Assembly (NCBI GenBank): GCA_965637545.1
Contig: OZ281494.1
Coordinates: forward strand, 868,001-932,000
Direction: 5' to 3'
Length of the DNA stretch: 64,000 nt
DNA from: Phallusia mammillata
Lineage: Eukaryota
Shown: positions 371-56,418 of the stretch, piece after piece
Numbering within the stretch: position 1 is the first letter of the stretch
Layout: each line of letters begins with the position of its first letter
Translations under genes and position numbers: made by a program
The notes under the pieces: model-generated
The model's input: only the letters and a program-made list of their open reading frames with translations
What the model was told of the DNA's origin: nothing
Database searches by the model: none

Positions 371-3300
371 CTTTCCGTTTTCCCTCAAGCCAGTGAGCAT
401 TACGATGATGTTGGAGTTTTCCTGCCAAACCATCAACCAGAAATCGCTGATTGTCTCCTCCTTCGGACCCTGAGTGGCGATGAACTTCCTCGCGTTATCG
501 TAACCCGGTATATAAGCGGCGTTGATGTAATCGTTTCCACCGCTTTCTTGCAAAACCACTCGAGCATGATCGTCTATTTAACAAACAAATCAAGAAGCTA
601 ATAGCTGATTACGTTTCCACGAGATAAACTGATCTGTAATCTGTTTGTTAGTTTTTCGTCAAGAAGGCGCCTGGTTGATTTTTTTTAACAACGGTATATA
701 GTTGGTAGCATTTGGTAGCAACAAAACAGATTTGCTGATTAGTGTTTTATGTCATTGCTTTTCTGCTCAGTTGACTTAAAAAATACCTTTTCGCGCAAGA
801 ATCTAAGGTATTTATACGTTTTCTACTTACAAGGGAAAATGTTCTTGTACCGGTTTCTCACAGCGTTTTGCGGCAACTGTGACACGTCCCTTGTTCTCTG
901 GTTGTTTTTGCTTTGGTTTTCGACTTTCTGGAACAGCAAAATATCCAAATATGAAATAGTTTAAAACTCCGATTTTCCAGCATTATTCTGATGTGACATG
1001 TCAATAGGGAAAGTCGCTCGTGATCATTTTCTCTGTTAAAGCTGATTCAAGTGACATTACAGTGAAAACAATTCATCTGTAAATTATGTTATTTCTGGTG
1101 CAATATGATAACGCCTGATTACATGAATTTTTCCCTCGATTTATAATTCTACTGAATGTGACGTTTCCTGGTTTCGATTGTGACGTATAGTCTGTGAATG
1201 AACCTTCCGGGTTTAGCTACGTGTATTCGATTAACAAATCTTACACCAGTAACCAACCTTAAACTCGTCGGAGAAAAGAGATCCTGACTCCACGTTTTTC
1301 TTGTACAAGTCAAACAATTTGGTGGCTCTGCAGTTGGACGCCGCGGTTTCAGGAAATGGATGTTCGTAAACTTGGTTTTGAACTTCAGGCGCTAACAATT
1401 CAAAAATGAACAAGTTTTCATCAAATTGTGCTAAAATTATAAAAATAGGTGAAGTAACACAAACAAAAACACTAAATATTGTGTCAGAGTTCATCCAACA
1501 AACATCTTTGAACGAAAATGAAGATGCTAGTTGTGGAATGTATCTCGTACACTTAAAATACTCAACATTTAGTGTTAACTCATAAGTCTAGTACGATTTG
1601 TGGCAGTTCAGATGAGAAATGTGTAAAGTATGCCTTTCTGATGTATCTGTCAGCAAAGATAAAAAAAACATAAGACTTTGACAGCACCTGAAAATCCAAG
1701 GCTTAAAGATTGATGAACTCCCTCATGACTAGGTTGATCCGTTCCAAGCCTATAAAGCACAAAAGAACTTCAATTTCACTTCTATTGTGCACTCTTAAAT
1801 TACCCTCTTGACTGGCATGACTAAGCGCAGGTTTTTTCATGCATGCTATTTTGACAAGGTTTCAATATTTCGACCACAAAACGAACTATTATTGACAATA
1901 TCCATCACAACAAATACCTGTTTTTTCGTCTTAAAAACATGACCACCACCACAACAATGACAAGTACCAGAAACAACAGCCCGATCACCAGACCAGCAAT
2001 CATTCCAACACTCGTTGAAGTCGCATTTAGATTTTCTAAACAAAACAGTTTGTTACACAAGGAGCACTGCTTTGGAGCACTTGCGCAACTGTGTGTAATC
2101 AAAGATGTAAAAACCAGTTTTTTAAAAATCGTTCGGTGCTTACGTCAGCATATTGTCAGCACTCAAATCAAATGTCACGAAGCCTTCACAACTTCACGAC
2201 ATATGGGTGAACTTACGATACACGCCTTTACCTTTGGGATAACAGTTTGGAGGTAGATTCCCCGGAGTTTTTACTTTCTGATTGGATGTGATGTTTGTGT
2301 TGATTGAACCAGTGACAATCACTGTGACCTGGAATAAATAACAACGACAGTTAGCTCACATTTTTATATGCAAGCTGTTGTATTTCTTTGTACTGTTTGC
2401 TTGAAGAGTAAAATAGAATGAGAAACAAATATATGAAACAAGCATTTATAGCTTGGATAATTGCCAATCTACATAGCACAGACAAATAGTAGTCACCACA
2501 GGCAAAAGAGTAATGAATGCGGTACAATTACCAAATCACGTGACTGTGGAATGCGTGTCCGCGATTCACTTCCTTAAGGAAAATACACGAAGCGGAACCA
2601 TAACAAAAACCGGCAACGTCGAACTATATTAATTAACAAAAGTTTGCATCTTGTAAAGAGTAAAACGTTTCTCACTTGTATATTATAGACGGTAGAATGC
2701 GCCAAACTTCCCAGTGTTGTGGAATGGTCTGAATACGGAACATGGAATTTCCTGTTTAATTTCGTGAAATAGACTTCCACCTGTTAGAAACAACAAGGAT
2801 TTCGATGTTACTGCATTTTGCCTAGCGAACGTTTTCTAACTAGCGCAAACTGATTAAATCGAAACGTAATATTCATTATGTTGAAAAAATCAAACTAAAA
2901 ATGACGTATTGAAACTAATTCCTTTACCTTTGCATTTAAATTGTGTTTGTTGATGAACTGATCCAATCCAGTCCAACTGACAACAACTGATGAGGCATTG
3001 CATTCAAAGGTCGTGGTATTGGTGGCAACTGTTGATGCATAACGAAAAAGTTAAGGTCCCAGAAAACACACATAACATAGCTGCTAAGATCAACGTCAGT
3101 GACGTTTGCAAAAGAATAACCATCAGCACAAAATCAAAAGCAACTTGGCCCAGGATTGTGTTTGGAAACAATAACACTTTTAAAACTAAATATGTGAATA
3201 CGTGGTTTTTGCTTGTTGTTTTACGTTTTTTTTTTAATTTAATGTAGGTTAAACCTTATTTTATTTCTACTGGTGTGAATGTGACGATATGTATGTCAGC

Positions 3301-54200: not shown

Positions 54201-56418
54201 TCATGCAAAATTTCATGAAGGAAATTTAATCACATGATCACGCGTGTTTTATCCCTAGGAACAACGAACCATAACACAGTTGCAGTTTACAACTTGGCCC
54301 GATCATGGGATTCCAGTAACTACATCCAACAAGATCCACCTACGTAACATGGTCGATGATTTGCAAAACACAAATGCTCCAATCATTGTGCACTGCAGGT
54401 AAAGGCTTGACAAACCCTATGTTGTTTTGATCAATCAACTACACATATGTATGCAGTGCTGGAGTGGGACGCACAGGTACTTACATAGCGATGGACAGTT
54501 TGTTTCATGAATTTGACGACAAGGGATCAGTTGACGTGCCAAGAACCTTTCGGAAAATGAGAGAGAACCGAATCGACATGATTCAAAATTCGGTAAGTCT
54601 CAGAAATGAACCCTTACAATAAGTAAATCAACTTCAGCCAACACATTGGATATTAAATACCCATCACTTACCAAATTTGTGTATTTACAGAAACAATACA
54701 TGTTCGTCTACAAACTGCTCATGGAGCGCGAATGTTTGGAGGAAACAGATAAAGATGTAACTCAACTCCAGTCTATGACTTCAAGTGATTTGTAAGCAAT
54801 TTTATAGCAACGAAGTGAATTAATGCATACATGTTGGTAATATAAACTGTCAAACTCGTATAGGAGTTGTTGTGGTAATTCACTAATTAGCCAATGGTTT
54901 AACTTGTATTACAGCCAGCAAATGCAAGACAAAGAATTCAACACGTTGTCATCGTGGAGATTTGGGGAGGAATGGCAGGAAAATCACCCACAGCTGAGAA
55001 CATGTAAACAAATGGATGACAATATTTTACTTTCTCACGAATTACAGGTCATGTTATTTTTCAGACAAGAACACGGCGATGAAAGTTTTGGACCATAAAA
55101 GCCAAAGAATTGAACAGCTGGATGCTTCCTATATCCAGGTGAGAATAAAATTTACATTCTCAGTTTAAATGTTTTTTTTTTTTTTAAAGTAGTTAAAATA
55201 CATTTACTCGTTTCCAAAAATGCTCTTTCTTTGTTTTGACAACATACAGGAACAAGGGTCTTCAGAATTCTTTGTTGCACCAAGAAATCCTGCTCCAGGA
55301 GAAGAAGAAAACTTTTGGAAGATGATCGTGGACAGAGGAGCTTCACTTGTCGTTGATTTGGACAACAGCATTCAAGTAAACCTAAAAAGCAGCGTAAAAA
55401 TGTTTGGATGCTGACTAAACATTGACTAAAACAACATTGTTTTCAGCTTCCTATCAATGCAGCTTTACAATACGAAGACATTTCGGTATCGGTTCGTGAT
55501 GTGAATGAGAATGAACTTCACAATCTGATCACTGCCAACGTCTGGTCTGCAACCAAGGCGTTTGTAAGCAGCCTTGTTGCTATGTTTTGTTAGATTATAA
55601 TAGGACAATCTCTTTGTAAATACAATATTATTCCGATTGAATCTTTGTACTCCGTATTTTAGACTCCCCAGCAATTGATGCTTCTGCAAGTCAAGGGATG
55701 GAGTGACGTGAAACGACCCCCGAAAGAAATGGACTTCATTAAAATTATCGAGGAAATGCAACAACTAAATGCAAAACAGATTTTCCAGTGTGTGTTGGTG
55801 GGATGCAGGTAAACAATATTTCTGCATATCAGCATCAATTCTAAAACCAAACTACCTGAAATGTACATTTGATTTCGGTTAAGTAAACGACTTTATCATT
55901 CCAAACTGCTTTATGCCTGAAGTTAAAAAGTCTTGCAAACAATATCAATTTAGACACCTTTGACATTATCCAGAAACGTTTTTTTTTTCTAGAGCCGTTT
56001 TTTTCTGGTGTAAACTTTCAAAATACCGAATCCAATCAACTTGATTTATTTGCAGTAACGGATCAACGAGAACTGGGACCTTCATCGCTCTGGTGAACAT
56101 TCTCGAACGTTTGAAGGCACAAAAGCGGGTGGATGTATTCCGAACTGTGAAAGACCTGAGAGATATGAGACCGAATATGGTCGACAACAAGGTAGTATTT
56201 TATGTAATAAAGCAAATAGGAATACTGAAAGTTGGTCTCATATTTCTGACTTCTGAACAAGCAAGATTAAATTCTGTGTTTATTTAATGTTCTGGATTAA
56301 AAATTAAAAATTTTCCTATAATATTGAATACATTTTGTTACAGGAACTGTACAAATACTGCTACTCAGTCGTCTTGCAGTATCTGTCTGATTTCGACACT
56401 TATTCAAACTTCAAGTGA
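48238..56418 (+). pseudogene. Gene 7: signal-CTL(+insert)-3xFN3-TM-ITIM-PTP D1-D2 paralogue with one nonsense codon in D1 (TAG 53705-53707)
   Basis: Exons 48238-48307, 48656-48832, 49606-49738, 49796-49917, 50073-50231, 50306-50500, 50708-50808, 50879-50983, 51237-51333, 51396-51496, 51553-51657, 51741-51837, 51967-52067, 52128-52232, 52292-52503 (TM), 52951-53006, 53119-53243, 53341-53437, 53556-53758, 53859-53987, 54259-54398, 54457-54592, 54691-54791, 54915-55003, 55065-55138, 55250-55375, 55447-55563, 55663-55808, 56056-56191, 56344-56418. Paralogues have TGG CAG (WQ) where this copy has TGG TAG. Confidence 0.85.
48867..49477. mobile_element. hAT-family MITE
   Basis: TIRs CAGGGGTGTCAAACTCG / CGAGTTTCACACCCCTG; exact 8-bp TSD TTGTAAAT (48859-48866 / 49478-49485). 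Confidence 0.92.

Follow-up and report, generated by a model that had tools for sequence, protein, structure and literature searches.

Introduction

As a rule, receptor tyrosine phosphatases are unrelated to the tyrosine-motif receptors with which they come together at the membrane. Can a single locus produce both kinds from one scaffold, and what would the two kinds then do to each other? This question is raised by a 64,000-nt stretch of the Phallusia mammillata genome (contig OZ281494.1 of assembly GCA_965637545.1, positions 868,001 to 932,000; hereafter the window). A first-pass annotation had noted here a cluster of paralogous receptor genes, some running into protein tyrosine phosphatase (PTP) domains and others stopping in a short tail with tyrosine motifs, and had interpreted them as paired receptors. 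Our analysis indicated that duplication made both receptor kinds from one scaffold at this locus, with a clean exchange point located after a shared juxtamembrane exon. We put the chance at roughly 0.5 that these genes represent a lineage-specific, locally duplicated family of type I receptors, whose two output classes are both functional and act on a single phosphotyrosine network.

Organization of the gene cluster

The window has a G+C content of 36% and just two long bacterial-style open reading frames (ORFs); exons are short, and introns go down to 54-60 nt. Clustering of stop-to-stop ORFs together with self-blastn revealed families of repeated exons, which occupy roughly 5.6 to 56.4 kb of the plus strand and 0.3 to 5.3 kb of the minus strand. 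These exons belong to seven paralogues at positions 371-56418 (g1 to g7), and the class order along the DNA is PTP, tail, tail, PTP, tail, PTP, PTP, so that both the number of copies and the interleaving of the classes agree with the initial description. The copies had been called tandem, which holds for g2-g7 on the plus strand, whereas g1 is inverted and lies head-to-head with g2. According to blastn and ORF clustering, all seven genes have 2-5 repeats resembling fibronectin type III (FN3) domains, a transmembrane (TM) segment and the juxtamembrane exon A. The ectodomain and TM had been described as common to all copies; the FN3-like exons and the TM are indeed present in seven of seven, but the lectin-like exons occur in g2-g7 and have been lost from g1.

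Gene models were built from nucleotide alignments of paralogous exons, with every AG/GT and every frame checked; automatic exon chaining was discarded, since it over-extended exons and gave wrong frames. Two of the seven genes are intact, one of each class (g3, tail; g4, PTP), and every intron in them is GT-AG. The proteins of 675 aa (g3) and 1400 aa (g4) predicted earlier were reproduced exactly as spliced ORFs. The exons present in the other five genes are in frame with GT-AG sites, the lesions named below excepted. The features are as follows, where E1-E5 are the exons of the lectin-like region, A (or A') is the exon after the TM, B is the terminal tail exon, and D1 and D2 are the two domains of the tandem phosphatase.

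371-5325, minus strand: gene 1, PTP class, partial; splice sites all AG..GT, no stops; continues beyond the window edge
5325-2232, minus strand: three FN3-like units of g1, then a separate TM exon (2035-1918) and exon A' (1749-1688)
1391-1258, minus strand: juxtamembrane/wedge exon of g1, then PTP D1 exons at 927-831 and 573-371 (PF00102 on 281-577, E 1e-26)
5645-5646, no strand: rearrangement junction; an antisense g1 intron abuts the middle of exon E1 of g2
5646-10178, plus strand: gene 2, tail class, truncated at its 5' end; open in frame as far as the stop, sites all GT-AG; partial E1, E2-E4 cassette, E5, two FN3-like units, TM
9968-10038, plus strand: exon A of g2
10099-10178, plus strand: exon B of g2 (KYEPF, AYEVPT, stop), found by motif scan and splice enumeration
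12363-18234, plus strand: gene 3, tail class, intact; 17 exons, complete ORF of 675 aa
12363-12429, plus strand: signal peptide of g3, then E1 (12496-12672), cassette E2-E4 (12885-13667) and E5 (14152-14346)
14499-17740, plus strand: three FN3-like units of g3; TM in exon 17644-17858, then exon A (18009-18076)
18137-18234, plus strand: exon B of g3 (DEDEYETV ... NPTYETIT, stop)
18345-18646, plus strand: second tail cassette of g3, intact; exon A2 (18345-18412) and exon B2 (18552-18646)
20330-31106, plus strand: gene 4, PTP class, intact; 36 exons, complete spliced ORF of 1400 aa with Pfam and PDB matches
20455-22241, plus strand: E1-E5 of g4, behind its signal peptide; then five FN3-like units (22408-26516) and the TM exon (26420-26622)
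26872-26927, plus strand: exon A' of g4, then the juxtamembrane exon 27033-27157 (VIYENL)
27257-29358, plus strand: D1 of g4 (WPD loop), then D2 (29536-31106; CSNGSTRTG, C-terminus DFDTYSNFQ)
32888-36256, plus strand: gene 5, tail class; signal peptide, E1-E5, two FN3-like units, TM
34044-34058, plus strand: A15 homopolymer in E4 of g5, a 1-nt frameshift and the sole lesion of this gene
35962-36029, plus strand: exon A of g5, then exon B (36166-36256; HEYENY ... NPTYETIT, stop)
38484-45821, plus strand: gene 6, PTP class; E1-E5, two FN3-like units, TM, A', D1 and D2 in frame apart from a TGA
48238-56418, plus strand: gene 7, PTP class; candidate signal-peptide exon (48238-48307), E1-E5, three FN3-like units
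52292-52503, plus strand: TM exon of g7, then A' (52951-53006), D1 and D2

The lesions differ from copy to copy. Downstream of the A15 run, g5 is open throughout in one frame with all splice sites intact, and its frame would be restored by one extra A or kept by skipping E4; the frameshift may be genuine, allelic or an artefact of the assembly. In g6 the signal-peptide exon (about 38360-38440) is decayed: it carries a deletion, and ATC in place of ATG removes the start codon; the TGA lies in E1 at 38528-38530. The sole lesion of g7 is an in-frame TAG at 53705-53707 in D1, where g1, g4 and g6 have CAG. Signal-peptide and lectin-like exons are absent from g1. At the junction, E1 homology begins at 5646 without an acceptor and the left flank matches the inter-unit introns of g1; both g1 and g2 lack their 5' parts because they are cut there, by one rearrangement or by an assembly join.

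The tail class

As the first-pass annotation had stated, g2, g3 and g5 end in short tails, about 52-55 aa past the RRR stop-transfer sequence, with two YExx motifs each: YEPF and YEVP in g2, YETV and YETI in g3 (spaced YETV-x11-YETI), and YENY and YETI in g5. The motifs are encoded by exon B, a single terminal exon of 26-32 codons that stands behind exon A and an intron of 60-136 nt. Before the stop, exon B reads DDDPEHKYEPFETENAYEVPT in g2, VADEDEYETVINVDGTNSNPTYETIT in g3 and DQHEYENYRATNGNPTYETIT in g5. In g2 (56 nt), g3 (B2) and g5, AATAAA occurs 56-204 nt downstream of the stop. All four copies of exon B, including B2 of g3, have an intact ORF and acceptor, and their two tyrosines stand at aligned positions. 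The suggestion that the second g3 cassette is a degenerate copy was ruled out, the cassette being intact, and the impression that g2 has no tail, which arose when a first tblastn with the g3 tail missed it, was corrected by a motif scan and splice enumeration.

The A-B intron of g3 (18077-18136, plus strand) is an in-frame GT-AG intron of 60 nt with donor AAG/GTAAGA and acceptor TTTTGCAG. The letters 'SYEEI' lie within it, and therefore a YEEI motif would be present in the protein only upon intron retention. An intron is found at the equivalent place in g2 (61 nt), g5 (136 nt) and the second cassette of g3 (139 nt).

The tail had been regarded as a class-specific unit. This holds for exon B and not for exon A, because exon A is also present in the PTP genes; in addition, g3 has two tail cassettes. 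No exon B-like sequence was found in the PTP genes within the window and no PTP remnants were found behind the tail genes in the window, and therefore the classes are distinct at the DNA level there. The idea that exon B is homologous to the PTP juxtamembrane exon (GNPTYETI versus GNVTYENL) was rejected, as the alignments were no better than shuffles (z<=1.8); a tblastn E of 0.44 between the two is a weak lead only.

None of the tail motifs KYEPF, AYEVP, DEYETV, PTYETI and EYENY fits [SIVL]xYxx[ILV], and the tails contain no ITIM (immunoreceptor tyrosine-based inhibitory motif), switch motif (ITSM) or canonical activation motif (ITAM). Only DEDEYETV of g3 approaches the hemITAM, but with V at +3; g2 and g5 have no acidic triad.

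The phosphatase class

The PTP exons are confined to g1, g4, g6 and g7, where 14 exons follow exon A and encode a tandem phosphatase. The D1 exons matched Pfam PF00102 with E values of 4e-19, 1.8e-12, 2.4e-10 and 1.1e-26, which bears out the earlier statement that these four genes run into PTP domains. D1 shows the motifs KNRY and WPD, and WPDHG together with VHC/SAGVGRTG is present in g4, g6 and g7. The D2 exon Df also matched PF00102 (E 8e-13); D2 has the motifs WSD and CSNGSTRTG, with CX5R retained, and the PDB matches of the D2 exon fall at D2 positions 510-570 of tandem receptor PTP (RPTP) chains. For both D2 exons with matches, PTP-epsilon was the best structure (64.8 bits versus 53, and 28.7 versus 26.6), and the third D2 exon (De) had no PDB match. 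The D1 exon P2 was non-discriminating, as PTPRS/LAR, PTPRE, PTPRG and PTPRA all scored within about 10 bits. As judged from these matches and motifs, the phosphatase appears to be of the PTP-alpha/epsilon type, with a D1 that is apparently competent.

The PTP-class proteins end in DFDTYSNFK or DFDTYSNFQ, and we take the C-terminal DTYSNFK to resemble the Tyr789 site of PTP-alpha. The juxtamembrane exon starts with V-x-Y-E-N-L in g4 (27033-27157) and g7 (53119-53243), a sequence compatible with the ITIM pattern as well as with the Grb2-type pYxN pattern. At the matching site g1 has QVYEHP and g6 has GAYQNV, with the tyrosine alone kept.

The shared ectodomain

Together, E1 and E5 look like one C-type-lectin-like domain (CTLD), on matches that are weak but consistent. 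The E5 profile matched CTLD structures only (KLRG1, Dectin-1, NKR-P1), weakly and in their C-terminal halves (E 0.08-2.6), and the E1 profile likewise matched only CTLDs (surfactant protein A, CLEC4A4), weakly and in their N-terminal halves (E 1.3-1.9). None of these profile matches reaches significance on its own. In the Atlas comparison, Lectin_C clusters made up 58 of the 60 named matches (score 0.91). The four-cysteine framework of CTLDs is present, with C1 in E1 (EKC) and C2, C3 and C4 in E5 (TTC, NC, YYAC), and the E5 core LIGARY plus WYWSDGS is invariant in six copies. Identity across the PTP and tail classes is 81-93% for E1 and 81-91% for E5.

Between E1 and E5, the lectin-like domain is interrupted by a cassette of three exons, E2-E4, with 130-138 codons. 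An example is:

49606-50231, plus strand: cassette E2-E4 of g7, 133+122+159 nt, 138 codons

No other part of the ectodomain is as divergent as the cassette (50% aa identity in E3); dN/dS of E2-E4 is 0.20-0.45, and the cassette is open in five of six copies. The exon phases also permit direct splicing from E1 to E5. An arrangement of two tandem CTLDs (E1-E3 and E4-E5) was discarded, since hhalign found no relation (probability 0.2%). E4 was likewise rejected as a CTLD: its profile matches none, and the cysteine pattern fits a single CTLD made of E1 and E5.

The repeat that follows is 101 aa long and is encoded by three exons of 101, 105 and 97 nt; only in g2 does one exon a measure 95 nt. The genes have 20 units altogether, 2-5 each, without stops and with intact splice sites in all. 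Their signature combines the 101-aa period with a W that is conserved in exon a and the exon b motif LxxSTxYxI, and FN3 identity is inferred from this period and pattern. Of the domain names given initially, lectin-like is therefore carried by profile matches and FN3 by pattern only. The 'first-unit' repeat that stands after E5 in g2, g3, g4, g5 and g7 is missing from g6, where E5 joins a second-type unit in frame (38484-41383), and therefore whole repeats can be gained or lost without breaking the frame. The repeat units of g1 (2232-5325, minus strand) are three tandem copies of about 1135 bp including introns, all of the 'first-unit' type (FECNASSVVVSW). The other genes have units of mixed types; the uniform tandem of g1 suggests that a triplication took place recently inside the gene.

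The TM is fused to the last repeat exon in six genes and has an exon of its own in g1; it is conserved and has no charged residues. The ectodomains measure 591 aa in g3 and 788 aa in g4, with 20-33 sequons. Every TM exon breaks off after the second base of a codon, and exon A/A', a small (56-71 nt) and poorly conserved exon found in all seven genes of both classes, supplies the third base.

Evolution of the exons

The exons differ about 15-fold in dS (0.07-1.2). Low values were found for E1 (0.11), P2 (0.07) and Df (0.17), and high values for E3 (0.99), E4 (1.2) and P3 (0.96); this mixture fits exon-scale gene conversion over old duplications. In this pattern E1, E5 and parts of the PTP have been homogenised, and other exons have long been diverging. 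The contrast is sharpest within the phosphatase domain, where P2 (53556-53758, 43122-43324, 27688-27890 and 573-371) has 95-98% nt identity in four genes while the adjoining P3 has a dS of about 1, which gives what appear to be sharp exon-scale boundaries of conversion. Together with the five damaged copies and the 2-5 FN3-like repeats per gene, this mosaic agrees with the birth-and-death turnover proposed in the first-pass annotation.

In no exon class does dN/dS reach 1 (range 0.04-0.60), and a whole-exon test for positive selection was negative. The diversity of E3 reflects old divergence rather than demonstrated positive selection, because its dS is high. In the E2-E4 cassette the tail and PTP genes are equidistant (54-66% aa identity), and only g6 and g7, both of the PTP class, reach 86%; tail and PTP cassettes are no closer than other pairs, and therefore there are no cognate activating and inhibitory partners. 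As for the tail, g3 and g5 share an identical NPTYETIT-stop even at saturated dS, and the two g3 copies B1 and B2 are 97% identical in protein versus 36% for A1 and A2, which may be read as some constraint, or conversion, on exon B.

Relation between the two classes

If the favoured reading holds, both classes would bind a like extracellular ligand via their common lectin-like core. Like PTP-alpha and CD45, the phosphatase class would have Src-family kinases or other phosphotyrosines as its targets, and the tail class would serve as a phosphorylatable docking receptor through its DEDEY- and YxN-type motifs; NPxY/YxxI of the tails could also drive PTB binding or endocytosis. A multivalent ligand would co-cluster the classes and thereby let the phosphatase determine how far the tails, or the kinase acting on them, are phosphorylated. 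Cooperation between the classes appears as plausible as antagonism, because of the precedent of PTP-alpha and CD45. PTP-alpha-type enzymes usually activate Src-family kinases, and for this reason an equation of the phosphatase arm with inhibition does not follow. A stronger form of the proposal, a self-contained ligand-gated phosphotyrosine switch in which the fused PTP sets the docking tyrosines of its paralogue directly or via Src kinases, and in which E2-E4, perhaps skippable, gives each gene its specificity, strikes us as improbable.

Several observations weigh against two working classes or against the domains on which they are said to rest. Five of the seven copies (g1, g2, g5, g6 and g7) are damaged, as the first-pass annotation had recorded for most copies, and in exon A and in exon B of g2 dN is close to dS, about neutral. 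Pfam on single exons (E<=0.1) called neither Lectin_C nor fn3. The best match of a profile of the 20 b exons of the repeat (Fb) was the FN3 of neogenin, a weak one (E 0.5), and Atlas placed the repeat in an FN-plug cluster (score 0.85). The Ca2+/sugar residues EPN/QPD and WND are missing, WEQ standing at the WND position in six of six copies, and therefore sugar binding is not predicted and the fold is lectin-like at most. A search of the ORF with TM and tail against 1.84 billion representatives gave no relatives: it returned two matches only, at the TM stretch, both of which Pfam assigns to unrelated families. A word-index search with E5 gave no relatives either; the queries being one ORF and one exon, longer relatives may exist. 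Contigs of four probable RNA runs held nothing on the TM and tail exons (17500-18700), which does not amount to evidence of absence; none of the runs that the run search gave for this stretch is recorded as RNA.

The reading offered in the first-pass annotation, a true paired system like KIR, Ly49, LILR or SIRP, which would have the PTP inhibit, the tail activate via SH2 kinases and the cluster evolve under pathogen or allorecognition pressure, seems to us unlikely, although part of it stands. The interleaving of two outputs on one scaffold, the birth-and-death turnover with its change in FN3 copy number, and the divergent cassette inside the binding domain are all as such a system would have them; DEDEYETV of g3 is near the hemITAM pattern [DE][DE][DE]xYxxL, and the Botryllus FF/FcoR loci are clustered sea-squirt receptors with ITIM or hemITAM (PMC12582321). 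The signalling details are against it. The tails have no ITIM, ITSM or canonical ITAM, with the acidic triad missing in g2 and g5, the TM offers no charged residue to an ITAM adaptor, and the one ITIM-pattern site, VxYENL of g4 and g7, sits on the phosphatase class. Nor does evolution favour it, as the variable cassette shows no cognate tail/PTP pairs, dN/dS stays below 1 everywhere and E3 diversity tracks high dS. The activation of Src kinases by PTP-alpha-type enzymes tells in the same direction, and the contigs of the four probable RNA runs have nothing on the TM and tail exons. A contrary view, that the tail genes are RPTP copies which have lost their phosphatase exons and drift in a graveyard around one working RPTP (g4), is doubtful. 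It would account for the five damaged copies, the near-neutral exon A and g2 exon B, the tail exons without RNA in the four probable runs and the failure to find homologues in the protein libraries searched. However, g3 retains a 675-codon ORF over 17 exons with all splice sites intact, and the remaining exons of g2 and g5 are all open save for the A15 frameshift of g5. The tyrosine pair of exon B is aligned in four of four copies, NPTYETIT-stop is the same in g3 and g5 at saturated dS, B1 and B2 are alike while A1 and A2 have diverged, and no phosphatase fossils lie behind the tail genes in the window.

The tails might also work independently of phosphorylation. NPxY and YxxΦ belong to the classical sorting motifs, endocytosis is common among lectin-type receptors, and NPTYETI closes the tails of g3 and g5, so the tail class might consist of endocytic or scavenger receptors whose NPxY and YxxI serve as sorting signals in ligand clearance or as a decoy. 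We hold this to be improbable as well, since g2 lacks NPxY and its YEVP is not a clean YxxΦ, NPTY has no aromatic residue at -5 as in the FxNPxY signal, and the acidic DEDEY and YENY contexts resemble kinase substrates or SH2 sites. Least credible is an arrangement like that of protocadherins or UGT1, in which TM exons of tail genes also splice to downstream A'/PTP exons within the groups g2-g3-g4, g5-g6 and g7. Each run of tail genes does precede a PTP gene, and TM exon and A/A' phases match in all genes; joins from TM to A/A' across genes are in frame because TM exons end two bases into a codon. Yet every PTP gene has a complete ectodomain of its own, the tail genes have their own stop exon followed by AATAAA (g2, g3 B2 and g5), and the join would have to skip 20-30 good exons. 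That no such join occurs in the RNA contigs carries no weight, because the contigs did not cover these exons.

Comparison with known receptors

The phosphatase class is like the R4 RPTPs (PTPRA/PTPRE) in its tandem D1-D2, in WPD in D1, in the CX5R kept in D2 and in the best match of both informative D2 exons to PTP-epsilon among solved structures. It is unlike them in its ectodomain, which in R4 RPTPs is short, unfolded and glycosylated and here has 590-790 aa, with a lectin-like domain and 2-5 beta-sandwich-like repeats. A large glycosylated FN3-like ectodomain on a phosphatase recalls CD45 and CD148, RPTPs with FN3-type ectodomains that gate ITAM/hemITAM signalling and of which CD148 has a single PTP domain. 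RPTPs of the CD45/CD148 type may regulate Src-family kinases beside tyrosine-motif receptors, including C-type lectin receptors (PMC10815196); at the present locus the tyrosine-motif receptor is instead a paralogue with the same ectodomain.

With KIR, Ly49, LILR and SIRP the cluster shares paralogues on one ectodomain with alternative outputs, interleaving, many pseudogenes and gene conversion. It differs from them in having no ITIM in the tails, no charged TM residue or adaptor logic, an enzyme that is fused rather than recruited, and no near-identical cognate pairs in the variable part. The Fester/FcoR clusters of Botryllus are ascidian receptors whose tails carry ITIM, hemITAM or 'core' YxxI/L/V motifs and switch by intron retention (PMC12582321). 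The tyrosine-motif tails and the in-frame YEEI intron of g3 may be compared with these, a likeness by description only; their ectodomains, however, are of the Ig superfamily and they have no phosphatase class. Dectin-1 and CLEC-2 likewise combine a lectin-like ectodomain with an acidic single-tyrosine motif, as g3 does, and Dectin-1 is among the weak matches of E5; in contrast to the present type I receptors with V at +3, they are of type II, with the tail at the N-terminus and L as the +3 residue.

The literature search found no CTLD-FN3 receptor phosphatase in tunicates and no description of the family, which accords with the first-pass annotation, where it was not recognised as described. 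A survey of sea-urchin phosphatases reportedly listed RPTPs with lectin domains. If both classes are expressed, the locus would be a natural experiment on ectodomain-matched phosphatase and docking receptors in phosphotyrosine tuning. Expression would also make it a further fast-turnover receptor cluster in an invertebrate chordate and provide a PTP-alpha-type enzyme with a large folded ectodomain, for which a ligand can be sought. Were the switch proposal true, paired-receptor logic would have been invented independently, with a fused enzyme, among the closest relatives of vertebrates. Without expression of the tail class, the locus would be a decaying RPTP expansion only.

A SINE-like repeat and a probable mobile element

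The contigs of the four probable RNA runs mainly represent an intronic repeat at 15300-16300, with faint signal at 13900-14700 and 16300-16900. The repeat lies in the g3 intron between exons 1a and 1b, contains a tRNA-Ser(GGA)-like element at 16078-16153 and, alone in the stretch compared with the contigs, is deep in four of four runs. Many contigs on it continue into dissimilar sequence, and it looks like a dispersed, transcribed element of the short interspersed (SINE) kind. A contig of run X3 jumps over 209 nt of the sequence that separates E5 from exon 1a in g3 (14315-14525). The ends of this gap are GA..TG and not GT..AG; the contig may stem from a paralogue elsewhere in the genome, because it has 3 mismatches in 51 nt.

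Just beyond g7, an ORF at 57728-58576 that encodes 282 aa and matches Pfam DUF7041 (E 1e-12) lies between two direct repeats (56900-57700 and 60155-60920), each about 750 bp long and containing the same ORF fragments. The region 56900-60920 is probably a mobile element.

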